This document shows positions 2,504 to 32,043 of a stretch of DNA of 32,452 nt, piece after piece (positions within the stretch are counted from its first letter, which is position 1; each line of letters starts with the position of its first letter). The DNA comes from Chiloscyllium plagiosum. Lineage: Eukaryota. The notes under the pieces are model-generated. The model saw only the letters and a list, made by a program, of their open reading frames with translations. It was not told the origin of the DNA and searched no databases. The translations under genes were made by a program, and so were the position numbers. The DNA lies in contig NC_057757.1 in the NCBI RefSeq assembly GCF_004010195.1, positions 3,903,763 to 3,936,214 of the forward strand, in the 5' to 3' direction.

Positions 2504-2872
2504 CTCGGACAGTGAGGTAGGTCCCTGAGACGCTTTGCCAGACCGCATAACGATTTCCTGTTGTCGTCAACCGACAGAAATAGCGGTTTGTATCCCTTGT
2601 TTTCAGCTGCTTTATCCGGATGGTCCCTGTCCTCTCCTTGGCCGGATCTCCCAGGAATTCAATTCGCCCTTGGTATTCAGGGTGAGTGTATCCCCGAGAC
2701 TTATTGAGGATAAATTCCCCGTGAAACTCGTTTCTTCTCCAGGCAATGTCATACCCTGTGGGTTTGTGTGTATCTGGGTAGGTGAATGTACACGGGATCT
2801 CGATCGACCCCCCTTCCACACCCTCCAGTCGATCCGGTTGGCTCACTGTGAAACCATCTCCATGGATCATTC
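2504..2872 (-). CDS. Ig V-set exon of a PILR-like (paired Ig-like type 2 receptor/Siglec-related) receptor
   Basis: 369-nt open exon, phase 1/1. Acceptor ctgtttcgctctctccctcag|GA, donor CGAG|gtaagt. Encodes GMIHGDGFTVSQPDRLEGVEGGSIEIPCTFTYP...IAWRRNEFHGEF...YQGRIEF...GTIRIKQLKTRDTNRYFCRL...WQSVSGTYLTVR. The WRRxxFHG, YFCR and WQSxxGT motifs match recalled PILRA/PILRB V domains. Confidence 0.9.
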
Positions 2873-3039
2873 CTGAGGGAGAGCGAAACAGCAAACAGTC
2901 ATTTAGGAATCCCGAATAAATCTCTCCTGGCTGGAGACCAGCCCCCAGGATATCCCCCAGTGACAGAGAGACTGTGTAACTGAGACAGCAAAATGTGACT
3001 CACCCCCAGGTATCTGTCACTCTGTATATAAACCACCCT

Positions 3040-3830
3040 GAATCCCTGTAACCCCCTCCAGCCCTTACACCCCCTCCCTATATCTGTACCCCCCTCCAGC
3101 CCCTACACCCCTCCCTATCTTTGGGACCCCCTCCAGCCCCTACACCCCTCCCTATCTCTGTAANNNNNNNNNNNNNNNNNNNNNNNNNNNNNNNNNNNNN
3201 NNNNNNNNNNNNNNNNNNNNNNNNNNNNNNNNNNNNNNNNNNNNNNNNNNNNNNNNNNNNNNNNNNNNNNNNNNNNNNNNNNNNNNNNNNNNNNNNNNNN
3301 NNNNNNNNNNNNNNNNNNNNNNNNNNNNNNNNNNNNNNNNNNNNNNNNNNNNNNNNNNNNNNNNNNNNNNNNNNNNNNNNNNNNNNNNNNNNNNNNNNNN
3401 NNNNNNNNNNNNNNNNNNNNNNNNNNNNNNNNNNNNNNNNNNNNNNNNNNNNNNNNNNNNNNNNNNNNNNNNNNNNNNNNNNNNNNNNNNNNNNNNNNNN
3501 NNNNNNNNNNNNNNNNNNNNNNNNNNCCCCTCCCTATCTCAGTATGCTCGTCCAGCTCCTACACCCCTCCCATTCTCTGTCACCTCCTCCAGACCTTACA
3601 CCTCCAACCATATCTCCGTAAATTCCTCCAGCCCTTACACCCCTCCTATCTCTAAATTCCTCCTTTCGCTATACCCTTCCTCTCCCTATCATTATCACCC
3701 CTGCAGCCCGTATATCCCTCCCTATCTCTGTAACCTCCATCAGTCCTCCTTGGTCTCTGCCTCCCTTTCAATCCCTACATCTCTCCCTATCCCTCTTACC
3801 CCTCCAGCCCCTATAATCCTCTTAGATCTC
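3040..3830. repeat. C-rich ~35-37-bp minisatellite spanning an assembly gap (N 3164-3526)
   Basis: Repeated CCCCTCCAGCCCCTACACCCCTCCCTATCTCTGTAA-like units on both sides of the gap, decaying towards 3830. Confidence 0.88.
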
Positions 3831-4054
3831 CATGGCAGAGGTTGTGGTGAGGGGGTGTACCTTTGGAAGGTCTCAGTCTGTGGTTATAGAACCCTCCCCC
3901 CCCCCAAACCTCTCCCTCTCCTGCAATCTCTCTTTCCTCATGTTCCCCCGTAAATCCCTCCCTCTGTCTGATCACTGGTTTAATTCTCCTAAAACCTCCT
4001 TTGGAACCCTGTCCTTTCACTGGGATGGATCTGGGGACTGCCTCGAGGAGCAGA

Positions 4055-4275
4055 TTTGACTGAGTTGAGGAGGAACGTCTTCCCCCAAAGGATTATGAAT
4101 CTGTGGAATTCCCTGCCCAGTGAAGCAGCTGAGGTTACCCCGTTGGGTGTTTTTGGATAGATTTTTGAACAGTTAAGGAGTTAAGGATTATGGTGCTGAA
4201 TCCATGAAAAGTTGAGCAATAACCTATTGAAAGGGGGAGCAGGTCGGAGGGGCCAGCTGGTTTAATTCTGTTCTT
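4055..4275 (+). mobile_element. Degenerate CR1-type LINE 3' fragment
   Basis: GAGGAGGAAC...AATCTGTGGAATTCCCTGCCCAG...GATAGATTTTTG matches the NFF.QRVV.LWNSLP...DRFL terminal region seen in other CR1 copies in this window. Confidence 0.65.
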
Positions 4276-4480
4276 GTAATCAAAGGGCTCCCCCCCAACC
4301 CTGTTGTAATTTCATCCACCCTCTTCCCTCGAGCAGATGGTATAAACATTTATAAACACATACAAACAGATTCAAGAACAGCTTCTTCCCCGTGCGACCA
4401 TGCTGCCCCTTTAACAAGGTTATTGTCACCCATGGTTTCTTTGAAGAGGGGTTGCAAAGGCAGAGCTTCCGATATGTCTG

Positions 4481-7400
4481 ATGTACACCTGAACTAGAGG
4501 AGTGCCAATAACCGGGGATGGAGGGTTTGGGAAATTTGCTAATGAGCTTCGGGAGGGTTTAAACTAATTCACCAGGGGTTTGGGAACCTGAATTGTAGCT
4601 CTAGTGTACAGGAGGTTGAAAGTAGTGAGGTCATAAATAAGATTGCAAGGTCACAAGAGTGTACTGGTGGCAAGAAGGTGGTTTGAAGGGTGTCTACCTC
4701 GATGCCAGGAGCATCCGGAAGAACGTGTGAACATTGCAGCATGAGTTGGTACCTGGGACTTTGATGTTGTGGCCATTTTGGAGACATGGATAGGGCAGGG
4801 ACAGGAATGGTTGTTGCAGGTTCAGGGATTTAGATGTTTCAGTAAGAACAGGTAGGCTGGTAAAAGAGAGGGAGGTGTGGCACTGTTAGTCAAGGACAGT
4901 CTTACGGTGGCAGAGAGGATGTTTGTTGAGGACTTGTCGACTGAGTTAGTATGGACTGAGGTTAGAAACAGGAAAGGAGAGGTCACCCTGTTGGCAGTTT
5001 TCTATAGGCAGCCAAAAAGTTCCAGAGATGTAGAGGAAAGGATTGCAAAGATGATTCTCGATAGGAGTGAGAGAGACAGAGTAGTTGTTATGAGGGACTT
5101 TAACTTTCCAAATATTGACTGGAAATGCTATAGTTCAAGTTGTTTAGATGGATCAGTTTTTATCCAATGTGTGCAGGAGGGTTTCATGACACAGTATGTA
5201 GATAGGCCAACAAGGGGTAGGGCCACATTGGATTTGGTACTGGGGAATGAACTCAGACAGGTGTTAGATTTGGAGATAGGTAAGCACTTTGATGACAGTG
5301 ACCACAATTTGGTTGCATTTACTTTAGCAATGGAAAGAGATAGGTATATACCGCAGGGCAAGGTTTATAGCTGGGGGAAAGGGAATTATGATGCAATTAG
5401 GCAAGATTTAGGATGCATAGAAGGAGAAAGAAAACTGCAGGGGACGGGCACAAATGAAATATGGAGCTTATTCAAGGGACAGCTACTGTGTGTCCTTGAT
5501 AAGTATGTACCTGTCAGCCAGGGAGGAAGTGGTTGAGCAAGGGAACTGTGGTTTGCTAAAGAAGTTGAATCTCTTGTCAAGAGGAAGAAGGAGGCTTAGG
5601 TAAAGATGAGACATGAAGGCTCAGTTAGGGCGCTTGAGAGTTATAAGTTAGCCAGGAAGGACCTAAAGAGAGCTAAGAAGAGCCAGGAATGGACATGAGA
5701 AGTCTTTGGCTCGTAGGATCAAGGAAAACTCTAAAGCTTTCTCTAGGTATGTCAGGAATAAAAGAATGACTACAGTAAGGTTAAGACAGTAATGGGAAGT
5801 TGTCCATGGAGTCCAAGGAGATAGGAGAGGTGCTAAGTGAATACTTTTGTCAGCATTCACACTGGGAAAAGGCAATCTTGTCTGGAATACTGATATTCAG
5901 ACTGTTAGACTAGACAGGATTGAGGATCACAAGGAGGAGGTGTTAGCAATTCCAGAAAGTGTGAAAATACATAAGTCCGCTGGGGCAGATGGGATTTATC
6001 CTCAGGTTCTCTGTGAAGCAAGGGAGGAGATTGCAGAACCTTTGGCTTTGATTTTTATGTCATCATTGTCATCAGAAATAGTGCCAGAAGTTGGAAGATA
6101 GCAAATATCGTTCCCTTGTTTCAGAAGGGGAGTAGAGACAACCCTGGTAATTATAGACCAGTGAGCCTTACTTCGGTTGTGGGTAAAATGTTGGAAAGGA
6201 TTATACAAGGTACGATTTAGAAGCATCTAGAGAGGAATAGTGCGATTAGGGATAGTCAACATGGTTTCGTGAAGGGTAGGTCGTGCCTCACGAACCTTAT
6301 TGAGTTCATCAAGAAGGTGGCCAAACTGGTGGATGAGGGTAAAGCAGTTGATGTGGTGAATATGGATTTCAGTATGGCATTTGATAAGATTTCCCACAGT
6401 AGGCTATTGCAGAAAGTACACAGGCATGGGAATGCGGGTAATTTAGCAGTTTGGATCAGAAATTGGATAGCTGAAAGAAGACAGAGGATGGTGGTTGATG
6501 GGAAATATTCATCCTGGAGATCAGTTATGATTGGAGTACCGCAAGAATCTGTTTAGGGCCACTGCTGCTTGTCATTTTTATAAATGACCTGGATGATAGG
6601 GGTAGGTGGATGGGTTAGTAAATTTGTAGATGATACTAAGGTGGGTGGAGTTGTGGACAGTGCGGAAGGATGTTGCAGGTTACAGAGGGGCATAAATAAG
6701 CTGTAGAGCTGGGCTGAGAGGTGGCAAATGGAGTTTAATGCAGAAAAGTGTGAGGTGATTCATTTTGGAAGGAGTAACAGGAATACAGCGTACTAGACTA
6801 ATGGTAAGAATCTTGGCAACATGCATGAGCAGAGAGATCTTGGTGTCCATGTGCATAAATCCCTGGAAATTGCCACCCTGATTGATTGGGCTGTTAAGAA
6901 GGCATGGGGTGTGTTGACTCATATTGATAGAGGGATTGAGTTTCGCATCCACGAGGTCATGCTGGGCAAAACATTGGCGCGGCCGCATTTGGAGTATTGC
7001 GTACTGTTGTGGCCACTGCATTATAGGAAGGCCGTGTAAGCATTGGAAAGGGTGCAGAGGAGATTTACCAGAATGTTGTCTGGTATGGAGGGAGGGCCTT
7101 ATGATGAAAGGCTGAGGGACTTGAGGCTGTCTTTGTTAGAGAAAAGGTTGAGAGGTGACTTAATGGAGTCATACAAGATGATCAGAGGATTAGATAGGGT
7201 GGATAGTGAAAACCTTTTTCCTTGATGGTGATGGCTAGCATGAGGAGACATAGCTTTAAACTGAAGGGTGATAGATATAGGATAGATGTCAGAGGTAGGT
7301 TCTTCATTCAGAGAGTAGTAAGGGCATAGAATTCCCTGCCTGCAATAGTAGTAGACTTGCCATCTTTAAGGGCGTTTAAATGGTCATTGGATAGACATAT

Positions 7401-8178: not shown

Positions 8179-9645
8179 ATGGCTCTGTCAGTCACAAAGA
8201 GTATTCTGGGGGTGGGAGAAGTGACCTTGGGGGTTTTACAAAACAAGGCAAAGCAGCTGCAATTAGCAGACAGACTGAACTTGGGGTTATCTACATTCCT
8301 CAGAAAAAGGAGAGATAATTACAGCAATAGCTCAGCATTTAAATTTGCTGGAAATGTCATTTGAATCTTTGGAGATGCCGAAAATTCAATTGAAGATGAA
8401 GCAGCTTGAGTTAGAGGCAAAAGGAAAAGAGAACAAGAAATGTAACTGTTGAAATTACGATTCAAAGCAGAGGAAAGAGAAAAAGAATGAAAGGCCCTAG
8501 CAGAACAAAAAGAAATGGACAGAATCGTTTCAGCAGAACAAAAAGAGAGAGAGAGAGAGAGGGGGGGAAAGGAAAGGAAGAAAGAGAGGGAGTTTGAACT
8601 TAATAAATTGGCACTTTGACAGGAGAGTCAGCTTAAAAGGATGGAGATGAAGGCTGAAGGTAAACTCAGTGAAGAGTGAGGATGAGCAAACCCCTGGGAG
8701 CCAAAGGCCTGGTGGGGATCTGTTCCAATACATCCAAGCGTTGCCTCAATTTGATGAGAAGGATGTAGAAGTCTTTTTCATCTCAGGTGAGAAGGTGGCT
8801 AAACAAATGCAGTGGGCCGTGACTATGTGGATTTTCTTGATCCAAACAAAACTTTTAGATACAGCAAGTGAGGTATTCACATCCCTATCAGAGGCGGAGT
8901 GGGGGATGCGTATGAGGTGATGAAGAAAGCCATCTTAAGTGCATATGAACTTGTGCCAGATACTTACAGACAACTTACAGGCTCAGTGGTTAGCACTGCT
9001 GCCTCACAGTGCCAGGGACCCGGGTTCAATTCCCGCCTCGGGCAACTGTGTGGAGTTTGCACGTTCTTCCCGTGTCTGCGTGGGTTTCCTCCGGGTGCTC
9101 CGGTTTCCTCCCACAGTCCAAAGATGTGCAGGTTAGATGAATTGGCCATGCTAAATTGCCCATAGTGTTAGGTGTAGGGGTAAATGTAGGGGAATGGGTC
9201 TGGGTGGGTTGCTCTTTGGAGGGTCGGTGTGGACTTGTTGGGCCGAAGGGCCTGTTTCCACACTGTAAGTAATCTAAAAAAAAGTTTCAGGAATCTAAGG
9301 AGTGACCCTGGTCAAACCTACATTGAGTTTGAAAAGATTAAACAAAGTAATTTCAACAGATGGAGAAGGGCATTAAAAATAGAACAAAACTATGACACTC
9401 TTAGAGAGAGGATTATTTGGAGGAGTTTAAAAATTCACTTTCTGAGGGAGTGACAACCCCTGTGGAAGAGCAGAGAGTGAAGACAGCAAGATTAGCAGCT
9501 GAAATGGCTGATGGTTATGAGTTAGATCATAAATCAAAGTTTGGCTTCCAACATCAATTTCAATCCGTGAGCGATAGAAACTGGGGAAAAGAGAAATCCT
9601 CATGTGGAAAGGGAAAAGCAGATGTCAGTGAAGATCATCAGGATA
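8179..9645 (+). pseudogene. Degenerate gag with SCAN-like capsid C-terminal domain (LTR element 1)
   Basis: MALSV..., LPQFDEKDVEVFFI..EKVA, KKAILSAYELVPDTYRQ|SINE|FRNL...FNRW...LEEFKNSL...ARLAAEMADGY; frameshifts and stops. Confidence 0.85.
8974..9283 (+). mobile_element. HE1-type tRNA-derived V-SINE inside gag
   Basis: A/B-box head (GGCTCAGTGGTTAGC...GGTTCAATTCC), V-domain TGTGGAGTTTGCACGTTC...GGGTTTCCTCCGGGTGCTCCGGTTTCCTCCCAC, CR1-like tail ending AATCTA. Confidence 0.92.
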
Positions 9646-10594
9646 ACGCTGGAGCTGTTTAACTTCTCTTTCCCCTTCAAGGGTTTCTATTTTATCCTGT
9701 GGTAAGTTATCCTGATGGTCACATGTTTCCTGATTCAACAGAAGTTTCTGACTGACTCACCCCCTCTCTGCAATCCCTCTCCTGTAAGAACCCGTACTTG
9801 AATTTAGCATTTTGCCAAGGAAATTGGGACCGCTCTTTGTTGAGTTATATTTTCATGTTTGTTGGGTGTTCAAACAGTTACTTTATTCAAAACTTGGTTT
9901 CCTTTTGTTTGTGTATAAATAAATCCTGTTTCATTTCAAACCGAGTGGTTTGACCAGTTGTGTCGCTGCTGGAATATCCACCTGACCCCTGCTTAAAACA
10001 ACGAAAAAAGCTCGGGTCTGGGCTGCCTGCTTAAAATGTTTGGGGGTGGGGTCTGCATGGTCCCTAACACCCGGCATTATCAGACTTTTGAACAGACCTC
10101 CCAAATATTAATTCTGATCTCTCGCTCTCTGTGACTGTAACTCTGCATTCTGCACTCTGTTCTACTTTCCTGACACACTCCGTATGATACGATCTGCCTT
10201 TCGAGCACACAAAACAATACTTTTCACTATATCTCTGGACATGTGACAACAATAAATCAATCCACGAGCCCTGGACACTTCTAGAGACAGATACTGCTGT
10301 TTGGAACGGTGGCCCGATTCCACCATAAATTGCCAAGTCGGGATGTGAGTCTAAACTTGCTTCCTTGAGGGGTGTTATTTTTCTAGTTAATTGTTTTCTA
10401 GTCATTGTTTTGGAACTTGACGGTTTGCAAGTTCTCTTAATAAGCAGCCGAATGGAAAGGAACTCATGGCGATTTACCCACAAGACCAGGATAGAAAAAA
10501 GCTTGGAGTCACGGAGTGGCTGGTGAAGGGAAGGACTGAGTCCGAATCAGACGCCAAGTTGGTGACATATTGGAATGAGATTGAATTGACTCAC

Positions 10595-10637
10595 CGACAC
10601 AGAGAGACAGAAGGAGGAGGTGAAGAGCAGAGCCCAT
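10595..10637 (-). CDS. Signal-peptide (leader) exon of the PILR-like gene
   Basis: ATG at 10637 in strong Kozak context (gcgATGG). Encodes MGSALHLLLLSLCV+G with phase-1 donor G|gtgagt. Joins the V exon to give MGSALHLLLLSLCVGMIHG/DGFTV. Missed by the ORF track. Confidence 0.85.
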
Positions 10638-11666: not shown

Positions 11667-11887
11667 CGAGCTGGAAATGTGTTGCTGGAAAAGCGCAGCA
11701 GGTCAGGCAGCATCCAGTGAACAGGGGAATCGACGTTTCGGGCATAAGCCCTTCTTCAGGAATGAAGAAGGGCTTATGCCCGAAACGTCGATTCTCCTGT
11801 TCCCTGGATGCTGCCTGACCTGCTGCGCTTTTCCAGCAACACATTTCCAGCTCTGATCTCCAGCATCTGCAGACCTCACTTTCTCCT
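11667..11887. mobile_element. 221-bp Penelope-derived fold-back element with hammerhead core
   Basis: 12-bp TSD CATGGATAGGAA (11655-11666 / 11888-11899). 91-bp inverted arms 11668-11758 and 11763-11853 with 2 mismatches and a GGAA loop. Confidence 0.9.
11728..11763 (-). ncRNA. Minimal type I hammerhead ribozyme motif, core intact
   Basis: Minus strand reads AUUC-CUGAAGA-A-GGGC-UUAU-GCCC-GAAA-CG-UC^GAUU, fitting CUGANGA / stem II / GAAA / UH. Confidence 0.7.
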
Positions 11888-12230
11888 CATGGATAGGAAA
11901 GGTTTGGAGGGATGTGGGCCAAATGCAGGCAAGTGGGATGAGTTAGTTTGGGAAATGTGGTCAGCATGGACGAGTTGGACTGAAGGGTCTGTTTCCGTGC
12001 TATATGAGTCTCTGAGAAGATATTTCCGCCAGTGGGAGAGACTGGGACCCAAGGGCACAGCCTCAGGAGTGAAGGGATGGACTGAGATGAGGAGGAATTT
12101 CTTCAGCCAGAGGGTGGGGACTCTGTGGAACTGATGGCCACAGAGGGCTGTGGGGGCCAAGTCATTGAGTGTCTTTAAGATGGAGAGAGATGGGGTCCTG
12201 ATTGGTAAGGGGGGATGGAGGGTCACGGGG

Positions 12231-12730
12231 NNNNNNNNNNNNNNNNNNNNNNNNNNNNNNNNNNNNNNNNNNNNNNNNNNNNNNNNNNNNNNNNNNNNNN
12301 NNNNNNNNNNNNNNNNNNNNNNNNNNNNNNNNNNNNNNNNNNNNNNNNNNNNNNNNNNNNNNNNNNNNNNNNNNNNNNNNNNNNNNNNNNNNNNNNNNNN
12401 NNNNNNNNNNNNNNNNNNNNNNNNNNNNNNNNNNNNNNNNNNNNNNNNNNNNNNNNNNNNNNNNNNNNNNNNNNNNNNNNNNNNNNNNNNNNNNNNNNNN
12501 NNNNNNNNNNNNNNNNNNNNNNNNNNNNNNNNNNNNNNNNNNNNNNNNNNNNNNNNNNNNNNNNNNNNNNNNNNNNNNNNNNNNNNNNNNNNNNNNNNNN
12601 NNNNNNNNNNNNNNNNNNNNNNNNNNNNNNNNNNNNNNNNNNNNNNNNNNNNNNNNNNNNNNNNNNNNNNNNNNNNNNNNNNNNNNNNNNNNNNNNNNNN
12701 NNNNNNNNNNNNNNNNNNNNNNNNNNNNNN
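12231..12730. other. Scaffold gap of exactly 500 N (probably an unsized join)
   Basis: Round-number N run that separates the minus-strand leader+V exons from the plus-strand TM/cytoplasmic exons. Confidence 0.95.
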
Positions 12731-13832
12731 AGTAAATTTGCAGATGACACTAAGGTCGGTAGAGTTGTGGGGAGTGATGAAAGATGTTTTAGGTTACAGA
12801 GGGACATAGATAAGCTGCAGAGCTGGGCTGAGAGGTGGCAAATGGAGTTTAATGCGGAAAAGTGTGAGGTGATTCACTTTGGAAGAAACAACAGGAATGC
12901 AGAGTACTCGGCTAATGGTAAACTTCTTGGTAGTGGAGATCAGCAGAGAGATCTTGGTATCCATATACTAGATCCTTGAAAGTTGCCACCCAGGTTGATA
13001 GGGTTATTAAGAATGGAAATGTGTTGCTGGAAAATCACTTTGGAAGAAACAACAGGAATGCAGAGTACTCGGCTAATGGTAAGCTTCTTGGTAGTGGAGA
13101 TCAGCAGAGAGATCTTGGTATCCATATACATAGATCCTTGAAAGTTGCCACCCAGGTTGATAGGGTTATTAAGAATGGAAATGTGTTGCTGGAAAAGCGC
13201 AGCAGGTCAGGTTATTAAGAAGGCATACAGTATGTTAGCTCTTATTGGTAAAAGGATTGAGTTTCAGAACCATGAGGTTATGCTGCAGCTGTACAAAACT
13301 GTGGTGCGGCCACACTTGGAGCTTTGCATACAGTTCTGGTCACCGCATTATAGGAAGGATGTGGAAGCTTTGGAAAGGGTTCAGAGGAGGTTTACCAGGA
13401 TGTTGTTCAGTATAGGGGGAAGGTCTGAGGGACTTGAGGTTGTTTTCATTACAGAGAAGAAGGTTGAGAGGTGACTTAATTGAGACATATGCAATAATCA
13501 GAGGGTTAGATAGGGTGGACAGAGAGAGTCTTTTTCCTCAGATGGTGATGGCCAGCATAAGGGGGCATAGCTTTAAATTGAGGGGTGATAGATATAGGAC
13601 AGATGTCAGAGGTAGGTTCTTTATTCAGAGAGTAGTGAGGGTATGGAATGCCCTGCCTGCAACAGTAGTAGACTCGCCATCTTTAAGGGCATTTAAATGG
13701 TCATTGGATAGACATATGGATGAGAATGGAATAGTGTAGGTTAGATGGGCTTCAGATTGGTTCCACAGGTTGGCGCAACATCGAGGGCTGAAAGGCCTGT
13801 TCTGTGCTGTGATGTTCTATATTTGATGTTCT
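12731..13832 (+). mobile_element. CR1/HER1-type LINE 3' portion with ~160-bp tandem duplication
   Basis: SKFADDTKVG...WAERWQMEFNAEKCEV...VRPHLE.CIQFWSPHY...FFIQRVVRVWNALP; very similar to 6620-7500. Confidence 0.95.
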
Positions 13833-13885: not shown

Positions 13886-14425
13886 TGTCACCTCAATGGT
13901 TAAGGCTGCAACATGGGAACCATGCAATGGCTCCATCGAACCAAGAAACTATTCAGGATGATAGGGTTATTAACGTGTCACAAAACCTCAAAGGAAGTCT
14001 GGTATCCCGCTGCGTGTGCCATATTACTGCAGAGGGTGTTTACAAGAATGGCCCCTGGAGTGTGGAGAATGTGGTGGCCGAGTGGTATTAGATTAGATTC
14101 CCTACAGTGTGGAAACAGTTCCTTCGGCCCAACAAGTCCACACCGACCCTCCGAAGAGTTACCCACCCAGACCCATTTCCCCCTGACTAATGCATCTAAC
14201 ACTACAGGCAATTTAGCATGGCCAATTCACCCTGACCTGCACATCTTTGGACTGTGGGAGGAAACCGGAGCACCTGGAGGAAACCCACGCAGACACGGGG
14301 AGAACGTGCAAACTCCACACAGACAGTCATCCAAGGCTGGAATTGAACGTGGATCGCTAGTGCTGTGAGGCAGTAGTGCTAACCACTGAGCCACTGTGCC
14401 AGGCTGTTTGTCCAGAGAGACCCAG
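13886..14425 (+). pseudogene. Decayed Ig V-set exon interrupted by an HE1 SINE
   Basis: Reads C(13886)HLNG*GCNMGTMQW, then DDRVINVSQNLKGSL, then YYC(14022-14030). Removing a 2-nt AG duplication and the SINE gives YYCRVFTRMAPGVWRMWWPSGTRLFVQRDP with phase-1 donor CAG|gtaatg at 14425/14426. Confidence 0.72.
14088..14400 (-). mobile_element. HE1-type V-SINE
   Basis: Reverse complement of the 8974-9283 SINE; tail TTAGATTAGATT at 14088, head GGCACAGTGGCTCAGTGG at 14400. Confidence 0.93.
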
Positions 14426-15282: not shown

Positions 15283-15872
15283 ATTTCTGAGAAGATTTGT
15301 AGCTCAGGGTGAGGTTCGGGTTGTAAGTTTGCTCGCTGAGCTGGAAGGTTTGTTCTCAGATGGTTCGTCACCATGCTAGGTAACATCATCAGTGAGGAGA
15401 CAGTGAAGTCTGCAAATGCTGGAGATCAGAGTTGAGAGTGTGTTGCTGGAAAAGCACAGCAGGTCAGGCAGCATCCAAGGAGCAGGAGGATCGATGTTTC
15501 GGGCCGGAGCCCTTCATTGGACATCATCAGTGAGCCTCCTGCGAAGCACTGGTGTTATGTTCAACTTTATGTGTCTTGGTCTGGTAAATTGGATGATATC
15601 ATTTCCTTATTCTCAGAGGTTGATAAATGGGGTCCAAATCGATGTGTTTATTGATGGAGTTCCGGTTTGAATGCCAGGCCTTTAGGAATTCCCGTGCATG
15701 TCTCTGTTAGCCTGTCCCAGGCTGGATGTGTTGTCCCAGTCAAAATGGTGTCCTCCTTCATCCGTATGTCAGGATACGAGTGACAGTGGGTCATGCCTTT
15801 TGGTGACTAGTTGATGTTCGTGTATCCTGGTGGCTAGTTTGCTGCCTGTCTGTCCGATGTAGTGTTTGCTGC
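15283..15872 (-). mobile_element. Penelope-like element fragment (GIY-YIG endonuclease + 3' terminal repeat with hammerhead remnant)
   Basis: KHYIGQTGSKLATRIHEHQLVTKRHDPLSLVS*H...HHFDWDN...INKHIDLDPIY. Downstream CUCA-CUGAUGA-U-GUUAC...GUGAC-GAACCAUC-UGAG at 15355-15396. Confidence 0.85.
15397..15520 (-). mobile_element. Single-arm copy of the short Penelope-derived element
   Basis: Same sequence family as 11667-11887; 14-bp TSD ACATCATCAGTGAG (15383-15396 / 15521-15534). Confidence 0.85.
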
Positions 15873-16712: not shown

Positions 16713-17030
16713 GGCACGCCATGGTGGCACAGTGGTTAGCACTGCTGCCTCGCAGCGCCAGAGACCCGGGTTCATTTCCCATCTCAGGTGACTCTCTGTG
16801 TGGAGTTTGCACATGCTCCCCGTGTCTGCGTGGGTTTCCTCCGGGTTCTCCGGTTTCCTCCCACAATCCAAAAATGTTCAGCTTAGGTGAATTGGCCATG
16901 CTAAATTGCCCGTAGTGTTAGGTGAAGGGGTAAATGTAGGGGAATGGGTCTGGGTGGATTGTGCTTCAGCGGTTCGGTATGGACTTGTTGAGCTGAAGGG
17001 CCTGTTTCCACACTGTGAGTAATCTAATCT
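16713..17030 (+). mobile_element. HE1-type V-SINE nested in CR1
   Basis: tRNA-like head, V-domain and AATCTAATCT tail. Confidence 0.92.
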
Positions 17031-17440
17031 GAACATGCCGTCCGGTCCAGGCGACATCCTGGTAAATCTCCTCTGCACCCTCTCTAAAGCTTCCACATCT
17101 CTCATATAATGAGGCAACCAGAACTGAACACAATATTCTAAGTGTGGTCTAACCACGGCTTCATAGAGCTGCAGCGTAATCTTGTGGCTCTTAAACTCAA
17201 TCCCCTGCTATTGAAACTCAACACAATATACACCTTCTTAACAATCCGATCAACTAGGGTGGCAACTTTGAGGGATCTATGGACATGGACATTCGTCCAG
17301 ACTGCCAAGTGTTCTGCCTTTAACCCTGTATTCTGCATTCAAATTCAACCTTCCAAGATGAATGACTTCACACTTTTCCAGGTTGAGCTCCATCTGCCAC
17401 TTCTCAGCCCAGCTCTGCATCCTGTCAATGCCCGACTGAG

Positions 17441-17784
17441 TTAGCATCCCCAAATGTGGAAACAGGCCCTTTGGCCCAACAAATCCACATTGATCAAAGA
17501 GTAACCCACCCACATCCATTCCACTGCCCTTTATTTGCCCAATGCACCTAACCTACACATCCCTGAACAATATGGGCAGTTTAGCATGGCCCACTCACCT
17601 AACCTGCACATCCCTTAGCACAAAGGCAATTTAGCATGGACAATTCACCTAACCTGCACATCTTTGGATTGTGGGAGGAAACCCACGCAGACAGGGGAAA
17701 ATGTGCACACATCACATAGACAGTCGCCCAAGATCCCTGGCGCTGTGAGGCAGCAGTGCTAACCACTGAGCCACCGTGCCACCC
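17441..17784 (-). mobile_element. HE1-type V-SINE nested in CR1, with internal duplication
   Basis: Head GGGTGGCACGGTGGCTCAGTGG on minus; the TTTAGCATGG...CACCTAACCTGCACATC segment occurs twice. Confidence 0.88.
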
Positions 17785-18488
17785 ATCGCAACCTACAACA
17801 GCTCTCCACACTATCTACAACTCCACCAACCTTCGTGTCATTAGCAAACTTACTAACCCACCTTTCCACTTCCCCATCCAAGTCATTTATAAAAATCACA
17901 AAGAGCAGAGATCTCAGAACTGACCCCTGTGGAACACCTCTGTTCACCGAGCTCCAGGCTGAATACTTTCCATCTACCACCACCCTCTATCTTCTATGGG
18001 CCAGCCAATTCTGTATCCAGACAGACAGGTTCCCTATATTCCAAGCCTCCTTATTTTCTGAATGAGTATTCTTGGGATGTTGTGGGAATTGGAAAGGCTC
18101 CTTCGTTAAGTTGCGATTTCAAGTCAGTTGGGTTTTCAAATAGTGCAGTTATTGTAAATTCTCTTTTGTTTGTGTATTGCTTCAATAAATTCTGTTTTGC
18201 TTCAAGCTGGGTAGTATGACCAGCTGCATCACACCTGGACTATCCACGGCACATCTACCTTTAAAATATGACAAAGTTCAGGTCTGTTCCTAAAGTGGGC
18301 TCCGTTCCTAAAGTGTTTTGAGGAGGTCTGGCCTGGTCCATAACAGATTGCAAACTCTTGGCAGGATTTATTCGATAGTTCCAATTTGGGATTAGGGTGG
18401 TTGGACTCAAAGGCAGCGAGTGGTAGGTGTTATTGTCTTTTGTTCCGGATGTTGAATCCGGTTGGTTTAAACCCTGCTTGGGGGAGGA

Positions 18489-21400: not shown

Positions 21401-23350
21401 TCGTAGGGAGCATCAGACATTAAAGACCATGTTGAGGGCTTCTAGTCAAGACTATCCAGATGATGAGGATAGAGGAATTCCATTTGTGCTTTTTGCCATC
21501 AGAGATGCACCAAATGAATCGACCAAATGCAGAACATTTGAATTAGTTTTTTTTTGGCATGAGTGGACCACTAAAAATAATTAAGGAGAAATTGGTGAGT
21601 CAGAATTCAGCCACCATATGTTTGGTCTCTGTGTCAAATTTTCAGGAACAACTAAATAAAGTGAGGGAACTGGCTCAACAGCATTTAAAAATATCACAGC
21701 ATATGCCGAAACAGGAAGCAGACACGAAATTAAAAACTCGCAATTTTCCGGTTGGAGATAAAGTGCCAGTGTTACTACCAGTGACAGGTGCACATTTAAA
21801 AGCATAGCTTAGTAGACCTTATCAAGTCAAAAGGAGATTGAGTGAGGTGGACTATTTGATCAGGACTCGACAGAAATAAATCTCACAGAGTGTGTCATGA
21901 ATATGCTCAACAGATATTTTGACAGGGATGGAAAGCAAAAGGAGACTGTGCTACTGGTTACAACACAGAGGGAAGCACCAAGTTCGGAGGACTCTGAATT
22001 GGACATTCCTCAAACTAAATTAGACAATGAGGAAATTATCAAAAATTTGGAGAAATTATTGACTTACCTTCCAGAGGAAAACTTGCAAAGACTCAAAAGA
22101 GTTATTGTTATTGCATAGAGATATGTGGAAATAAACTAGGAAGTACTAACCCAATTATACACGATGTTGATATATGAAATTCTGTTTTGATTAAGCAACA
22201 TCTTTGAGACTTAACTCTCTAAATTTGGCAGAGGTTCAAAGAGATTGAACTCATGCCCCAAGACAACATAATCAAAGTGAGTTACAGTGTCTGGAGCTCA
22301 CCCATAATAATGGTGCCAAAACTGGATGGTACCCAATGGTGATGTGTTGGCTATCACAAAGTCAATGCAGTTACAAAGTCTGATTCATATCTGATTTCAC
22401 ATTTGGAAGACTGTATTGAAAAGGTGGGACAAGCAACTTCTATTTCTAAGTTGGGCTTACTCAGAGGATACTGGCAGGTACCTTTATTCGAAAGAGTGAA
22501 AGACAATTTTGCCTTTCGTTACGCCGAATGGACTGTACCAATTTAAAGTCATGTCATTTAGTGTGAAAAATGTGCTAGCCACATTTCAAATAACCAATCT
22601 GGTCATTTCTGGATTACCCAATTGTGTGGTATATATTGATGACCTGGTGATTTTTTTGTCACACACGGAAGGAAGATTTGCAACATTTATCAGAATTATT
22701 CGACTGGCTTCGCGGGGGCAGGCTTGGTGATAAACCTGGCCATGAGTGAACTTGCCAAAGCCCAAGTCACCTTCTGAGGCCATATTATCGAACATCAACA
22801 AATGGCCCCACAGAACATAAAACCAAAGGTTATTGGGGGGTTTTCCATACCATCAATCAAGAGAGCAGTACTATGATTCCTGGGATTGACTAGATTTTAT
22901 TGGAAACTTGTACCAAATTTTTGTAGGTGGCTGCTCCACACACTGAATTCTTAATAAAAGTAGGAAGTTTCAGTGGATACAGCTTGAGAGCTGTGTTAAT
23001 CACCACCCCAGTGTTAGCTACACTTAATTACACAAAGCCATTCAAGGTGGCTATTGATGTAAGTGATGTGGGTGTCGGTACTGTGCTCTTACAGGAAGAT
23101 GACGAGAAGAAATATCGACATTTGAAAAGGCGACTTTGAGCTTGGTGTTGGCGTTACAACATTTATGTTGCCAGCAATTTGCCTGAGACAATCATGTTTA
23201 CAGAGGATAACCCACTGAAGCTTTTGGAGAAATTTGAGGACAAAAATTCCAGACTGTTTAGATGGAATTTATTATTGCAACCATTCAATTTGAAAATTGT
23301 ACACGTGGCAAGGTGAAAAAACATGATTGCCAACACATTGTCAAGATTTG
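18489..23350 (+). pseudogene. Decayed gag-pol of element 2 in order gag/SCAN - Zn knuckle - PR - IN - RT - RNase H
   Basis: CFHC[del]HVKSQC ~20030; LLRDMGS ~20281; GGHFG..KT...FYWP...C.TC ~20990-21090; SDQKSNFTS ~21305; GDKVPV..RPYQV ~21750-21830; SSPIIMVPK ~22295; GYWQVP; YIDD 22632-22643; AIDVSDVGVGTVLLQ ~23050; RLFRWNLLLQPF, IANTLSR ~23250-23345. Confidence 0.92.
18768..19122 (+). mobile_element. Short, internally deleted CR1 3' end inserted in gag
   Basis: KAYGVLAFIGRGIEF...VRPHLEYCVQFWSP fused to LPVAVVDSPSL; tail (TTCTATG)n. Confidence 0.9.
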
Positions 23351-25733: not shown

Positions 25734-25954
25734 GTCAAAACATGTGGTGGTGAGAAAGCACAGCAGGTCAGGCAGCATCCGAGGAGCAAGAGAATCGACG
25801 TTTCGGGCATTAGCCCCTTTATCACATTCCTGATGAAGGGCTAATGCCTGAAACGTCGAATCTCCTGCTCCTCAGATGCTGCCTGACCCCCTGTGCTTTC
25901 CCTGCAATGCCTTTTTTAACTCTGATCTCCAGCGTCTGCAGCCCTCACTTTCTC
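25734..25954. mobile_element. 221-bp Penelope-derived fold-back element, second and more diverged copy
   Basis: 15-bp TSD CCAGTTCAGTTTCTA (25719-25733 / 25955-25969); inverted arms centred at ~25827. Confidence 0.88.
25826..25861 (+). ncRNA. Minimal type I hammerhead ribozyme motif, core intact
   Basis: AUUC-CUGAUGA-A-GGGC-UAAU-GCCU-GAAA-CG-UC^GAAU. Stem I AUUC/GAAU is fully paired and ACGU is palindromic in place of stem III. Predicted cut after 25857. Confidence 0.72.
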
Positions 25955-26158
25955 CCAGTTCAGTTTCTACTCAGTGGTAACTCCTCCCCCCCACCCCACC
26001 CCACCGCCCAGGATGTTGATCGTGTGGGAGGGGATTCAGCCTTGGTAACACCACTGAATGTCAAACGGCAACAGTTCAGTTGTTGGAGACAGCCATTGCC
26101 TGGCATTCGTATGGCGCCGATCTTACTTTCATTAAAGTGGTCCTCTCTCTGTTTTCAG

Positions 26159-26365
26159 CGCGGCGATCAAATTCTTCCACATCCACGGTCAAAGCCATCA
26201 TGGTTTCAACATGGCAACCAATGTCTTCTACAACCATGGTAACAACCATGGGAAAATGTCAGAAGTTGCCCTGGATTGTAGCGATTGCGTGTGTAGTGAT
26301 AGTGCTCATTGCTATCATGGTGATAGCAGCTACCGTATACTGCAAGAAAAAACGTCAGCAGCGAG
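26159..26365 (+). CDS. Ser/Thr-rich stalk + transmembrane exon of an inhibitory-type Ig receptor
   Basis: 207 nt, phase 1/1. Acceptor tcctctctctgttttcag|CG, donor CGAG|gtaagg. Encodes ARRSNSSTSTVKAIMVSTWQPMSSTTMVTTMGKCQK-LPWIVAIACVVIVLIAIMVIAATVYC-KKKRQQR (uncharged TM, basic stop-transfer). Confidence 0.9.
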
Positions 26366-27494: not shown

Positions 27495-27507
27495 CAGTTT
27501 CGGTTTC
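27495..27507 (+). promoter_or_regulatory. Candidate intronic ISRE/IRF site
   Basis: CAGTTTCGGTTTC fits the AGTTTCNNTTTC consensus and lies in apparently unique DNA. Confidence 0.4.
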
Positions 27508-27819: not shown

Positions 27820-28080
27820 GAGACAGAGAGACACAGTGTCACAGAGACATAGGGTCAGGCAGACATAGAGACACAGTGTCATAGAGACAGAGAGACATAG
27901 GATTGTACAGATGTAGAGACATGGGGTCATAGAAACATAGTGTCATAGGGTCATAGAGATATAGAGACATGGAGACATAAAGACTTAGGGTCATAGGGTC
28001 ATCAGGACATAGGGTCATAAAATCATAGAGTCATGGAGAAATGGAGACTTGAAGTCATACAGACCAAGAGACATAGAGAT
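27820..28080. repeat. Degenerate 8-bp microsatellite (CATAGAGA/CATAGGGT) expanded from a CR1 tail
   Basis: Repeated AGAGACAT / AGGGTCAT units abutting the 3' end of the minus-strand CR1. Confidence 0.8.
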
Positions 28081-28955
28081 GTACAGCATGGAAACAGACC
28101 CTTCGGTCCAACTTGTCCATGCTGGCCAGATATCCCAATCTAATCTAGTCCCATTTGGCAGCATTTGGCCCATATCCCTCTAAACCCTTCCTAATCCTGT
28201 ATCCATCCAGATGCCTTTTAAATGCTGTAATTGTAACAGCTTCTACTGCTTCCCCTGGTAGCTCATTCCATACATGCACCATCCTCGGTCTGATAAAATT
28301 GCCCCTCAGGTCCCTTTTAAATCTTTCCCCTCTCATCTTAAACCTTTGCTCTCTAGTTTCAGACTCCCCCACCCAGGGGAAAAAGGCCTTGTCTATTTAC
28401 CCTCTCCTTGACCCTCATGATTTCTATAAGGTCATAACTCAGCCTCCAACACTTGGGGTGGCACAGTGGCTCAGTGGCTAGCACTGTAGCCTCATAGCAC
28501 CAGCGTCTCAGGTTCAATTCCAGTCTTGGGTGACTGTCTGTATGGAGTTTGCACATTCTCCCTGTGCCGGCGTGGGTTTCCTCCTACAGTCCAAAGCAGT
28601 GCAGGTGTGGTGAATTGGCCATGCTAAATTGCCCCTAGTGTTAAGCGTGTCATTCAGAGGGAAATGGGTCTGGGTGGGTTACTCTTTGGAGGGTTGATGT
28701 GGACTGGTTGGGCCAAAGGGCCTGTTTCCACATTGTAGGGAATCTAATCTAAATACCCCAGCCTCTCCCTATAGCTCAAACCCCAGCAACATCCTTGTAA
28801 ATCTTTTCTGAACCCTTTCAAGTTTAACAACATCCTTCCTATAGCAGGGAGACCAGAATTGCACACAATATTCCACAAGTGGGCCGAACCAATGTCCTGT
28901 ACAGCCTCAACATGACCTCCCAACTCCTGTACTCGATTCACTGACCAATAAAGGT
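28075..28955 (-). mobile_element. CR1-type LINE 3' portion containing an HE1 SINE (28455-28752, +)
   Basis: Minus-strand RFKMRGERFKRDLRGNF...VWNELPGEAVEA. SINE head GGGGTGGCACAGTGGCTCAGTGG and tail AATCTAATCTAA. Confidence 0.88.
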
Positions 28956-29254
28956 AAGCTTCTTCACTACCCTGTCTCCCAGAGGGGCAACAACGCAGGT
29001 CCAAAGTGTGGGTATTGCTGTGCTCACCCATACTGAGGCAGCCAGAGGTTAACCACCAATGCAAGCAACCAAGATGGCAGGCAGCATGATTTGGCCAAAG
29101 CAACGATTGAGACATGCAGTTGTCACATTGGCATCTACCTGACAATATGGAAAGTTCTAGCAATAATAGAAATTGCCAAAGAAAGTCTTCAGCACCTAAC
29201 AAGGTATGTAAATAGAAAAATATAGTTACACTTTCGAGTCGAGTGACCCTTCCC

Positions 29255-30100: not shown

Positions 30101-30256
30101 CCAACTGTCTCAAAAGGGACAGTGGCTAGAACTGAGAGGGGTGGGTGCTCAGGAGGGGTGGGTGTTGTAGTTTCACTGGTGGAGATGGTGGGGAATCGCT
30201 TACAAACACGAGAGCGTGTCCCCTGAGTGCTTTGCCATCTGCTTTGTATCTTTCAG

Positions 30257-30300
30257 ATTCCGGCGCACCGTGCCAACCTGAGACAGCGCCCGCTGGTGAG
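30257..30300 (+). CDS. Small cytoplasmic exon of the inhibitory receptor
   Basis: 44 nt. Acceptor ctgctttgtatctttcag|, donor GAG|gtaaga. Phase 1 to 0 exactly bridges the TM exon and the ITIM exon; encodes DSGAPCQPETAPAGE. Confidence 0.7.
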
Positions 30301-31104
30301 GTAAGACCCAGAGGTGGATGGAGGTGGGGCAAACTCGGGAAATGGCAAGGGGGTGTGGGTGGGGGAGGACACTTCCTCACAGCACCCTCGGGAATCTGAC
30401 GGGATAATGTTGGAAATAGGAGCGGGTGTAGGCCATTCGCTCACCCCCGTTCCCACCCCGAGCCCGCTCCCCAAGTGTTGGAGGCTGAGATGTGACCTTA
30501 TAGAGGTTTATAAAGTCATAAGGGTCAATATGGGAGCAATGTCAAAGGTCAGCTGCTAAGGTTGCTGCCAAGCGACGGGAATGGTCGACTCTTCCCATGC
30601 CTCTTTCTCATATCCCCAGTTTCCGTAATCTTCTTTTTTTGGCCTCGTCATGCTCCATGAACTCCGGCATTCTGGACAGAGCGGGGCCTAGCGGTACACA
30701 GCAAGATCCCATGGAGCTGTGGAACTGCTACCTCCCACTGGGTGACGGCTGAGCTCCCCTCTCCCCACCTTGCCCAGCCACTGTTTGTATCTCCCAGCCT
30801 CCCCGCGCTCCCCCATCCCCCGAATGTACCCGAACGGTGTCGTCAACACTGGATTGAGGCTTTCATTTCCATAGTGCCTTCCCTGGCCTCAGGACGATCC
30901 ACCAAGGACTCGGTCCTTACAAGTTATTTTTTCTCGGGAGGCATTTTCGTCTTCCCTCGCGCCACCTCACCTGAATGACGGCGTTCCAGAACCTTCTCCT
31001 CCTGGGGTCGGCCTGGAAACTCGACCGGGAGGGACGAGGCCTGAAGGTTTTGCCCATTGTCTTGGGGAACATGACTGGGGGGCTAGAGGGATCCAGGGGC
31101 CTGC

Positions 31105-31140
31105 ATGCGCGTGCGTGTGTGTATTCACGTGTGTCTGTGA

Positions 31141-31175
<35 letters not shown>

Positions 31176-31530
31176 CGTATCTGTGTGTGTGTGAGCGTGT
31201 GTTCACATCTGAGCGCACACGTGTGTGCTCGTGTCTATGCGTGCTCATATCTGTGTGTGTGTGCTTGTGTCTGCGTGTGCGTGTGCACGTGTCTGTGTGT
31301 GTGCGTGCATTTGTGTGCAAACGTGTCTGTATGTGTGCACGTGTTTGGTGTGTGCTCTCATGTCTGTGTGTGTGTGGACATGTGCGTGTGTTCGTAACTG
31401 TGTGCACGTGTCTGTACGTGAGCACACACGTATGTGCTCGTGTCTGTCTGTGCGTGCTCATATCTGTGTGTGCTTATGTCTCTGCATGCATGTGTGTGTG
31501 CAAATGTGTCTGTATGTGTGCACGTGTTTG
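31105..31530. repeat. Degenerate (GT)n / purine-pyrimidine alternating tract
   Basis: About 425 bp of GTGT/GCGT/GCAC alternation with internally duplicated blocks (GTGCTCATATCTGTGTGTG). Confidence 0.93.
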
Positions 31531-31896
31531 TAGGGATGGGCGGGCAGACAGGCACAACGTCGTGTGGCAACTGGTTGCCATGACAACAGCCAGGCCATTA
31601 AGTGAGACGCGGATCCGAGGTGACCCATTTCCACCCCCACACCCAGCCCTGGATATCTGAGGGGAGGGGAAAGGGGGTTGGGGGCAAGAGTTGGCCAAAC
31701 ATGAATCGATAACTCGCCCCACCCTGCCTCCTGCCTCCCACCTCCGGACCTCTATCCAGGTGGTGGACATGGAAGTGCAGGTCGGCGGAAACTCCCAATG
31801 GGATCACTCCCTCTGCAACCCCTTTCTCACCTCCCGTCCCCTCTCTCTCTCTGCTTCACCCACCACCCCCATCCACTGGACCCCCACCCTCATCAG

Positions 31897-32043
31897 CTCG
31901 CCCAGCCGGAAGGCCTGGGCTATGCCTCTCTGCAGGTCGGAGGAGGAGGAAGAAGAGAAGGCCCGATGACCAGGAGCAGGACCCTGCGAGAGGATGGAGA
32001 CGTTGTGAATGCGGCCGTGTTGTTTCAGACAGACTCTCGCTAG
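31897..32043 (+). CDS. Terminal ITIM-bearing cytoplasmic exon (PILRA-like tail)
   Basis: First AG after a ~115-nt AG-free pyrimidine-rich tract; phase 0. Encodes LAQPEGLGYASLQVGGGGRREGPMTRSRTLREDGDVVNAAVLFQTDSR*. LGYASL (31915-31932) fits the ITIM consensus. Confidence 0.78.
   Translation, partial: LAQPEGLGYASLQVGGGGRREGPMTRSRTLREDGDVVNAAVLFQTDSR

Follow-up and report, generated by a model that had tools for sequence, protein, structure and literature searches.

PILR-like receptor exons in the whitespotted bamboo shark lie on two strands and most likely derive from two paralogous genes

The stretch of Chiloscyllium plagiosum DNA analysed here (the window, 32,452 nucleotides) contains five exons of PILR-like receptors; the rest holds repeats only, with no other cellular gene. 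Two of the exons are on the minus strand and are referred to as gene A. The leader exon (10595-10637, 43 nt) opens with an ATG start, encodes MGSALHLLLLSLCV plus 1 base and ends at a GTGAGT donor. The V-set Ig exon (2504-2872, 369 nt) has the acceptor ...CTCCCTCAG and the donor GTAAGT, and is in phase 1 at both ends. The three remaining exons are on the plus strand and are referred to as gene B. These are a stalk/TM exon (26159-26365, 207 nt; in phase 1 on either side, between the acceptor ...TGTTTTCAG and the donor GTAAGG), a cytoplasmic exon (30257-30300, 44 nt; entered in phase 1 after the acceptor ...ATCTTTCAG and left in phase 0 at the donor GTAAGA) and the last coding exon, which carries an ITIM (31897-32043, 147 nt; acceptor ...CTCATCAG, stop codon TAG). 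An Rfam search at gathering scores over positions 1-28500 returned 0 matches.

The original prediction had joined these five exons into one complete gene for a 269-aa protein. Direct inspection reproduced the exon sizes (43, 369, 207, 44 and 147 nt, together 810 nt), the AG/GT splice sites and the compatible phases. The exons were searched singly, with no spliced protein as query, and all five proved homologous to the corresponding parts of shark RefSeq proteins. The ends of the alignments coincide with the exon boundaries, a degree of sequence agreement that is well beyond chance. The single gene model itself did not stand, since the leader and V exons lie on the minus strand and the stalk/TM, 44-nt and ITIM exons on the plus strand, so that no single transcript of the present assembly could encode the 269-aa protein. 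Relatives also have an exon-sized block that the 269-aa model omits. A tblastn search with the V peptide and a profile HMM of 14 shark proteins, run in six frames, recovered a single V exon and a single leader, both on the minus strand; even at full sensitivity the 14-protein profile gave no further V exon in the plus-strand frames, and neither did the V peptide.

In RefSeq, gene A is the C. plagiosum gene named 'PILR beta' (P0160). The leader exon is identical to residues 1-14 of this protein (14/14, with the profile match at 10593-10637) and the V exon to residues 16-137 (122/122); leader, split codon and V together are identical over 137/137 residues. Downstream of the V domain, P0160 and the window differ. 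The stalk/TM of P0160 matches the plus-strand stalk/TM exon at 55/65 residues, and the region of the 44-nt exon at 21/25, with a read-through tail matching at 23/25 in another frame. A 26-residue block of P0160, NIRKGS...QSQE, has no counterpart in the window, and the P0160 tail reads through the donor of the 44-nt exon and has no ITIM. These figures suggest that the 3' exons of P0160 are a paralogous copy located elsewhere. The V exon had been assigned to the stalk/TM exon of the window, whereas in RefSeq it is already joined to another stalk/TM sequence. As a computed model with an unusual tail, P0160 could itself be a chimera of neighbouring paralogues.

The stalk encoded by gene B is rich in Ser/Thr (14/35) and its TM is uncharged. 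The stalk/TM exon is closest to that of the C. punctatum 'PILR beta' P0164, which it matches at 62/72 residues without a frameshift, including ARRSNSSTSTVKA. Between the TM and ITIM exons there are 19 AG/GT-flanked candidates of 44 nt, 12 of them open in frame; the exon at 30257-30300, with the peptide (D)SGAPCQPETAPAGE, is the only one of the 19 whose peptide matches relatives (P0005, P0160 and P0162 were aligned). The last exon was matched by tblastn to P0005 (E 6.7e-11) and P0162 (E 1.1e-8). It encodes one ITIM, LGYASL, and a second motif, VVNAAV, in which Asn (codon AAT) replaces the Tyr of the relatives, where the second site reads VVYAAV, ILYAAV or VLYAAV.

The block omitted from the 269-aa model lies between the TM and 44-nt parts in 7/7 of the shark relatives examined whose TM is uncharged and followed by a tail (P0160, P0162, P0005, P0151, P0164, P0165 and P0017), and is 26 residues long in the four that were measured. 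In P0005 and P0162 the exon set runs leader, V, stalk/TM, a 78-nt block, a 44-nt block and a two-motif tail. In the window, the intron between the TM and 44-nt exons has no gaps, and we found no 78-nt juxtamembrane exon in it: local alignment scored 26 at best against a mean of 28.75 for shuffled peptides; motif scans and alignment of the peptides of four relatives gave nothing above the shuffled controls. As assembled, gene B is without leader, V exon and 78-nt exon, and it has lost the second tyrosine motif. Among C. plagiosum proteins of 123-392 and 155-493 aa, only P0160 has such a TM and tail, and none is a model of the plus-strand exons. We regard gene B as most likely a partial copy, incomplete and inverted. 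As its exons are all open and have canonical splice sites, it may still be a live gene.

The window is interrupted by two runs of N, neither of which touches any exon. Gap 1 (3164-3526) falls in the leader-to-V intron of gene A, within a 37-bp minisatellite. The tandem unit flanks the gap at 3042-3163 and 3527-3653 on the same strand, so that the two pieces look consistently oriented. Gap 2 (12231-12730, a length that is only estimated) separates the minus-strand 5' exons from the plus-strand 3' exons. Both of its flanks are repeats with further copies in the window, and the right flank is a LINE reverse-transcriptase fragment that begins mid-copy. Hence, continuity and orientation across gap 2 have no support within the window, and the strand switch of the 269-aa model must fall at this gap or nearby. 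Between gap 2 and the exons of gene B lie about 13 kb of retrotransposon debris, made of fragments of LINE, SINE and LTR elements. The segment at about 14090-14400 is a SINE, of which the window holds four further copies. A candidate dead V exon at 13886-14425 was discarded: the two ORFs searched there had no Pfam V-set match at E up to 10.

The most likely explanation, which we favour with modest confidence, is that two paralogues account for the window, which would be part of a PILR-like receptor gene cluster of the whitespotted bamboo shark. Gene A would run on the minus strand, with its leader and V exons inside the window and its stalk/TM and cytoplasmic exons beyond the left edge, a position that we place from the protein sequence of P0160. 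Gene B would be the 3' half of a second paralogue (stalk/TM, 44-nt and ITIM exons), located on the plus strand past gap 2; its 5' exons could lie in that gap. Two genes are preferred because P0160 shares the V sequence exactly but the stalk/TM at only 55/65 residues, and the 269-aa protein would, under this explanation, be a chimera of the two. A misoriented scaffold piece would look identical, with one copy of each exon type. In such a case there would be one gene and an error in the assembly, with either the leader/V piece or the TM/44-nt/ITIM piece misoriented at gap 2, and the exons would make up one inhibitory gene of PILR-like type, in which the 78-nt exon is naturally absent. The window does contain each exon type exactly once, in complementary halves on opposite strands, with compatible phases and with a repeat-flanked gap of unsupported orientation between the halves. 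The lack of a separate protein model for the plus-strand exons in the size ranges searched also agrees with one gene. Against it, the perfect match of P0160 ends with the V domain, and its divergent stalk/TM indicates that the assembly of this species has a second such exon, the one modelled with this V. Furthermore, the contig of the V exon extends left past the window, so that a simple flip would put further unseen sequence between V and TM, and the extra block present in all seven relatives would have to be missing. We regard a single misassembled gene as unlikely.

We likewise consider it improbable that the window holds two complete head-to-head genes, with an intact, expressed gene B whose leader and V are hidden in gap 2. 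The reading frames of the three gene B exons are open, their splice sites are canonical and one ITIM is intact, and the close match of the TM exon to P0164 runs without a frameshift. Several kb may be missing at gap 2, since the sequence to its right begins partway through a LINE copy. However, in an intact gene B the intron between V and TM would have to exceed 13 kb and be packed with pieces of LINEs, SINEs and LTR elements. Its 78-nt exon is missing from an intron without gaps, its second tyrosine motif is lost, and no C. plagiosum protein of 123-493 aa with its TM or tail was found.

The original prediction of a PILR-like V domain was borne out. The ORF of the V exon encodes one V-set Ig domain (Pfam V-set, E 6.8e-12), and a single V-set Ig domain in the ectodomain is described as a PILR feature (PMC3533184). 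In P0160 and the other single-V shark relatives, one V is followed by a stalk and then a TM. When the window V was searched against PDB with phmmer, the best single-domain matches were PILRA (65.6 bits) and PILRB (64.3 bits), followed at a distance by Siglec-15 (37.4), domain D1 of pIgR (37.3), sialoadhesin (32.7), NKp30 (27.4), CD33 (27.1) and the CD300-type CMRF35-like molecule 1 (23.8). Among the matches listed, no single pIgR domain exceeded 37.3 bits (30.5 within the full-length chains listed). A shark-only profile of 21 chondrichthyan sequences gave PILRA 105.8 and PILRB 101.4 bits, with PILRA 40 bits or more ahead of every other single-domain family: Siglec-15 reached 64.9, the lone pIgR D1 45-50 (50.1 at best), sialoadhesin 46.3, NKp30 35.8 and CD33 31.9 bits. 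No NITR chain was among the best 60 matches in either PDB search. As a reading of sequence similarity, the PILR assignment holds at the family level.

Siglecs have an N-terminal V-set domain followed by one or more C2-set domains, and pIgR and CD300 have pIgR-type V domains, which in pIgR occur several in tandem. It is very improbable that the shark V domain belongs to one of these families or to NKp30, with the PILR name in RefSeq being just a best-hit label. The whole-chain score of pIgR is high (83.7 bits), but it is a sum over several domains, none of which comes near PILRA on its own. The window has one V exon only, and its single-domain scores (up to 37.3 bits for pIgR, 23.8 for CMRF35-like molecule 1) led us to reject a pIgR or CD300 identity, although V domains of pIgR are the next-best sequence matches. 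Two relatives carry other labels, 'Siglec-14' for an amphibian protein and 'sialoadhesin-like' for a teleost protein, and the tree nodes that link the chondrichthyan clade to tetrapod PILRs or to other groups all have bootstrap values of 61 or less. Nevertheless, none of 13 single-V shark proteins examined has a C2-set domain after the V, which leads directly to stalk and TM, and the Pfam Ig_CD22 match (24.6 bits) is below its cut-off of 27; a Siglec identity was hence rejected. The motifs WRRxxFHG, YFCR and WQS align with tetrapod PILRA, as does the two-motif tail (G-I/L-V-Y-A-S/T-L ... L-Y-A-A-V). What Siglec-15, sialoadhesin (Siglec-1) and the CD33-related Siglecs share with the shark domain is the V-set fold and the F-strand arginine for sialic acid, and such an arginine is described as common to PILR and Siglecs (PMC6235402, PMC13358205). 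With the shark profile, the CD33-related Siglecs scored about 30-32 bits against 105.8 for PILRA.

We collected 258 V stretches from 164 proteins, of which 98 hand-picked stretches plus the window V (99 rows) entered a careful tree and 160 were left out. This tree contains a chondrichthyan clade of 30 V domains with support 98/91, from a bootstrap that had not settled (correlation 0.925). In the same bootstrap, the deeper nodes, involving tetrapod PILRs, amphibian 3-V proteins, teleosts, lungfish and lamprey, all reached 61 or less. With all 259 rows, FastTree grouped the sharks with the set of tetrapods and amphibians at a support of 82. The trees contain no named Siglec, CD300, pIgR, NKp30 or NITR sequence. 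A horn-shark model with three V domains (P0001) is labelled 'pIgR-like'; each of its V units has its own stalk/TM-like stretch, and the model looks like a fusion of tandem genes.

The likeness to human PILRA and PILRB (PDB 9pd2, 3wuz, 4nfb, 4nfd, 4nfc) extends from the single V-set ectodomain to its binding site. The residues that PMC6235402 describes as needed for ligand binding by PILRA include the sialic-acid-binding R126 together with Q140, R72 and F76. In the window V, R100, Q112, R45, F49 and G51 align with R126, Q140, R72, F76 and G78 of PILRA, and the W139 equivalent is also present; the reference for this alignment was the PILRA of Pongo (P0172), in which these residues stand at the human numbering. 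Related shark proteins also have the Ser/Thr-rich stalk, uncharged TM and two C-terminal tyrosine motifs of PILRA, in the same order. Meanwhile, the shark V is only 32-33% identical to the three primate PILR rows and 32-39% across 10 tetrapod rows. It keeps the B-strand Cys, which is Phe in the six mammalian sequences of the alignment, has Asp at the position of PILRA W59, and forms an F-G hairpin that is shorter by 2-3 residues than that of the primate rows. From the conserved residues we infer that the V domain would bind sialylated O-glycan ligands as PILRA does, with the R126-equivalent arginine, positioned by the Q140 equivalent, acting together with the R72 and F76 equivalents.

The prediction of a PILR-type paired system in sharks fared better in the relatives than in the window. 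The inhibitory features of the window, an uncharged TM exon and the LGYASL exon, lie on the strand opposite to the V exon, and a tblastn search with P0161 found no charged-TM exon in the window. The complete inhibitory form, with an uncharged TM and an ITIM tail, occurs in P0162, P0005, P0165 and P0017, and in the relatives the second tail motif has Tyr where the tail of the window has Asn. In H. ocellatum, P0161 has a K in the TM and a 17-aa tail and P0162 has two ITIM-like motifs, and their V domains match at 109/115 residues. P0163 and P0166 show a charged-TM, short-tail form similar to P0161. Thus, related sharks have a charged-TM partner as in the pairing of PILRA with PILRB. The V domains of the C. 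punctatum proteins P0164 and P0005 ('PILR alpha') and of the H. ocellatum proteins P0162 and P0161 are 81-87% identical to the window V. ITIM and charged-TM forms with near-identical V domains make a PILR-type paired system in cartilaginous fish plausible. In such a system, the ITIM-bearing members would recruit SH2 phosphatases, and the charged-TM members with short tails would signal via a DAP12-like adaptor.

The main result is thus a correction: an apparently complete gene was stitched from two strands, and the gene of its V exon is already a PILR in RefSeq. Such names are given to proteins of sharks, skates and a chimaera, C. plagiosum included, which answers the question whether the family was annotated in cartilaginous fishes: it is. 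In the literature searched, we found no published description of PILR in a cartilaginous fish. The locus is also an example of how gaps bounded by repeats can give rise to misleading exon sets in clusters of immune genes. At the level of the family, a modest but useful outcome is that receptors of PILR-like type occur in cartilaginous fishes, where they carry the ligand-binding residues of human PILRA and have both ITIM and charged-TM partners. When paired receptors began to sense sialylated O-glycans can now be tested, a question to which databases imply an answer through automatic names. We tentatively propose, as a possibility not far short of an even chance, that the jawed-vertebrate ancestor had a PILR-type paired system, with ITIM and charged-TM forms, a shared V with the full set of sialic-acid-binding residues, and a canonical B-F disulfide later lost in mammals. 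Multi-V proteins with the same V type also occur in lamprey (P0008, E 4e-51 over four stretches), a hint that the origin may be older than jawed vertebrates.

All five exons from which the original prediction had assembled a single inhibitory PILR-like receptor of 269 residues were located in the window (32,452 bases, G+C 47.5%, with two runs of N at 3164-3526 and 12231-12730, hereafter gap 1 and gap 2). The exons have the claimed sizes, for a total of 810 nt, and their phases are compatible (1, 1-1, 1-1, 1-0, 0). They are not chance ORFs, since each of them aligns with the corresponding part of shark RefSeq proteins, with alignments ending at the exon boundaries. The leader exon (10595-10637, 43 nt, starting with ATG, donor GTGAGT) and the V exon (2504-2872, 369 nt, acceptor CTCCCTCAG, donor GTAAGT) are encoded on the minus strand. 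Meanwhile, the stalk/TM exon (26159-26365, 207 nt, donor GTAAGG), the 44-nt exon (30257-30300, donor GTAAGA) and the last, ITIM exon (31897-32043, 147 nt, stop TAG) are encoded on the plus strand. A profile HMM built from 14 shark proteins, searched at full sensitivity in six frames, recovered a single V exon and a single leader on the minus strand, along with a single stalk/TM and a single ITIM exon on the plus strand. No second V exon was detected in the window, either by tblastn with the V peptide or with this profile. As the two exon sets lie on opposite strands, the 269-residue protein is impossible as one transcript of the present assembly, and the proposed gene model is wrong. Our best reading is that the locus contains two paralogues, gene A on the minus strand and gene B on the plus strand.

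When the V-exon ORF was used as query against a collection of 5.8 billion proteins, 10 proteins were returned from 33 candidates, nine of them bearing the NCBI name PILR alpha or beta. Residues 1-137 of P0160, the RefSeq 'PILR beta' model of C. plagiosum, are identical to the leader, split codon and V of the window (137/137 positions). Downstream of the V, P0160 matches the plus-strand stalk/TM exon at only 55/65 residues and the 44-nt-exon region at 21/25, and it contains a 26-residue block, unlike the window. These differences indicate that the 3′ exons of P0160 come from a paralogous copy absent from the window, presumably located on the minus strand, downstream past the window's left edge. 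The tail of P0160, which has no ITIM in the model, is a read-through of the donor of the 44-nt exon, matching the window read-through (30253-30404) at 23/25 in another frame; judging from this similarity, it is probably a retained intron and not the true C-terminus. P0160 is itself a computational prediction whose tail is unusual, so it is no proof of the two-gene reading.

The exon set of the 269-residue model was also incomplete, as it left out an exon-sized block that relatives display between the TM and the part encoded by the 44-nt exon. This block occurs in all seven available shark relatives whose TM is uncharged and followed by a tail (P0160, P0162, P0005, P0151, P0164, P0165 and P0017); in the four that were sliced, it is 26 residues long (NIRKGS...QSQE or a similar sequence). 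It was not found anywhere in the window, and in the ungapped intron between the TM and 44-nt exons its top local score was 26, compared to a shuffled-peptide mean of 28.75. Gene B as assembled is a 3′ half only, with no leader, no V exon and no 78-nt exon for this block. The nearest relative of its stalk/TM is P0164, a 'PILR beta' of C. punctatum (62/72 residues), and two targeted searches (3 matches from 5 candidates, and 4 from 68) revealed no C. plagiosum protein other than P0160 with this type of TM and tail. At its second tyrosine motif, the Tyr of relatives (VVYAAV, ILYAAV or VLYAAV) gives way to Asn (VVNAAV, codon AAT), and its TM exon is preceded by 13.4 kb packed with fragments of LINE, SINE and LTR elements.

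Both gaps lie outside the exons. Gap 1 falls in the leader-to-V intron, within a minisatellite whose 37-bp unit is repeated on the same strand on either side (3042-3163 and 3527-3653). Hence, the leader and V contigs look consistently oriented, and gap 1 is probably an unassembled portion of this array. Gap 2 separates the 5′ exons on the minus strand from the 3′ exons on the plus strand. It is flanked on the left by a fold-back repeat and a repeat in common with 28082-28193, and on the right by a LINE reverse-transcriptase copy resembling 6617-6900. Nothing within the window links its two sides or confirms the orientation across gap 2, which lends some weight to the possibility of one gene on a contig misoriented at this gap. 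We consider that unlikely, since P0160 has an identical leader and V yet departs from the window in the stalk/TM. It is likewise doubtful that gene B is complete, with its 5′ exons concealed in gap 2, because the 78-nt exon goes undetected in an intron free of gaps and the second tyrosine motif has been lost. According to the preferred reading of two paralogues, gene A would be the annotated gene, with its 5′ half inside the window, and gene B would be an inverted partial copy, probably decaying. Among 19 listed sequencing runs containing this stretch, none is recorded as RNA.

The PILR-like nature of the V domain, also part of the original prediction, held up. Pfam assigned it to the V-set domain only (E 6.8e-12). 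Against all PDB sequences, its top single-domain scores were those of human PILRA (65.6 bits) and PILRB (64.3 bits), over the whole length, compared to 37.4 for Siglec-15, 32.7 for sialoadhesin, 29.8 for Siglec-8, 27.4 for NKp30, 27.1 for CD33 and 23.8 for a CD300-type chain. Chains of pIgR reached 83.7 bits only as a multi-domain sum, with no single domain above 37.3. A profile of 21 chondrichthyan sequences only scored PILRA at 105.8 and PILRB at 101.4 bits, followed by Siglec-15 (64.9), lone pIgR D1 (50.1), sialoadhesin (46.3), NKp30 (35.8) and CD33 (31.9); the margin of PILR over other families is thus wider with this profile than with the window V alone.

An alignment that included 10 tetrapod proteins places residues R45, F49, G51, R100, W111 and Q112 of the window V opposite R72, F76, G78, R126, W139 and Q140 in PILRA of the orang-utan (P0172), where these fall at the human numbering. 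Passages of PMC6235402 describe a salt bridge from PILRA R126 to sialic acid, with Q140 positioning R126, and reduced ligand binding of R72A, F76A and Q140A. The shark V differs in retaining the B-strand Cys, replaced by Phe in the six mammalian rows of the alignment, and in having Asp at the position of PILRA W59. Both tyrosine motifs in the tails of related sharks align with those of tetrapod PILRA. The earlier functional inference of a putative PILR-type sensing of sialic acid seems reasonable. Related sharks encode both charged-TM (K or R), short-tail forms (P0161, P0163, P0166) and uncharged-TM forms with two ITIM-like motifs (P0162, P0005, P0165). The V domains of P0161 and P0162, both from H. 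ocellatum, match at 109/115 residues. The coexistence of these forms, with close V domains, fits the PILR definition in PMC3533184.

A phmmer search of the window V against 1.84 billion representatives retrieved 585 proteins (E <=0.001), and names were obtained for 30 of the best 150 of these, in three sets of 10. Eight members of the first set were 'PILR alpha/beta' of shark, skate or chimaera, including XP_007910027.1 of the elephant shark, and nine of the second were tetrapod PILRA or PILRB. The third set contained a single PILR, the others being mostly uncharacterised proteins with several V domains, from amphibians, lungfish, teleosts and lamprey, with one row each labelled 'Siglec-14' and 'sialoadhesin-like'. 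Trees were built from rows that included no named Siglec, CD300, pIgR, NKp30 or NITR sequence. FastTree on all 259 V stretches recovered a chondrichthyan clade (99) and joined it, with support 82, to the set of tetrapods and amphibians. IQ-TREE on 99 hand-picked rows recovered the same clade (98/91), with all deeper nodes at 61 or below and a bootstrap that had not settled. Kinship of the shark V with PILR is solid at the family level; the tree does not demonstrate one-to-one orthology.

The PILR-like gene is already known at database level, as RefSeq applies the PILR name to the gene owning the V exon and to relatives in at least 10 other cartilaginous fishes. In the library searched, we found no paper on PILR in cartilaginous or bony fish. 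Lamprey multi-V proteins (P0008, P0033, P0125) display the same V type (P0008: E 4e-51, four stretches, 29% identity). A horn-shark 'pIgR-like' model (P0001) repeats a unit of V plus stalk/TM-like sequence three times, and looks like a fusion of tandem PILR-like genes.

The window is also rich in repeats. A 104-bp minisatellite (3-2239, 21.5 copies, 91% matches) occupies the intron that immediately follows the V exon on the minus strand, and the long ORFs there are repeat artefacts. At 13886-14425, Pfam detected no V-set domain in two ORFs at E up to 10, and the shark PILR profile had no match; the stretch from about 14090 to 14400 is a SINE that recurs at 8980-9277, 16724-17030, 17441-17781 and one further place. 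Rfam returned no family at gathering scores in positions 1-28500. A family of fold-back repeats, each about 220 bp (11668-11889, 25742-25955, 15393-15515, 32214-32329), includes copies adjoining gap 2 and others some 200 bp before the stalk/TM exon. Among the retrotransposon debris (4877-7300, 12731-13750, 17100-18000, 22500-23140) are reverse-transcriptase fragments, an endonuclease from a LINE (Exo_endo_phos_2, E 4e-9) and an RNase H from an LTR element (RT_RNaseH_2, E 4e-10). The copy at 12874-13196 contains an internal direct duplication of 162 bp (98.8% identity). Finally, a low-complexity TG/CA-rich tract (30967-31660) in the intron preceding the ITIM exon produces spurious long ORFs (CVCVCV..., HTHTHT...) on both strands.
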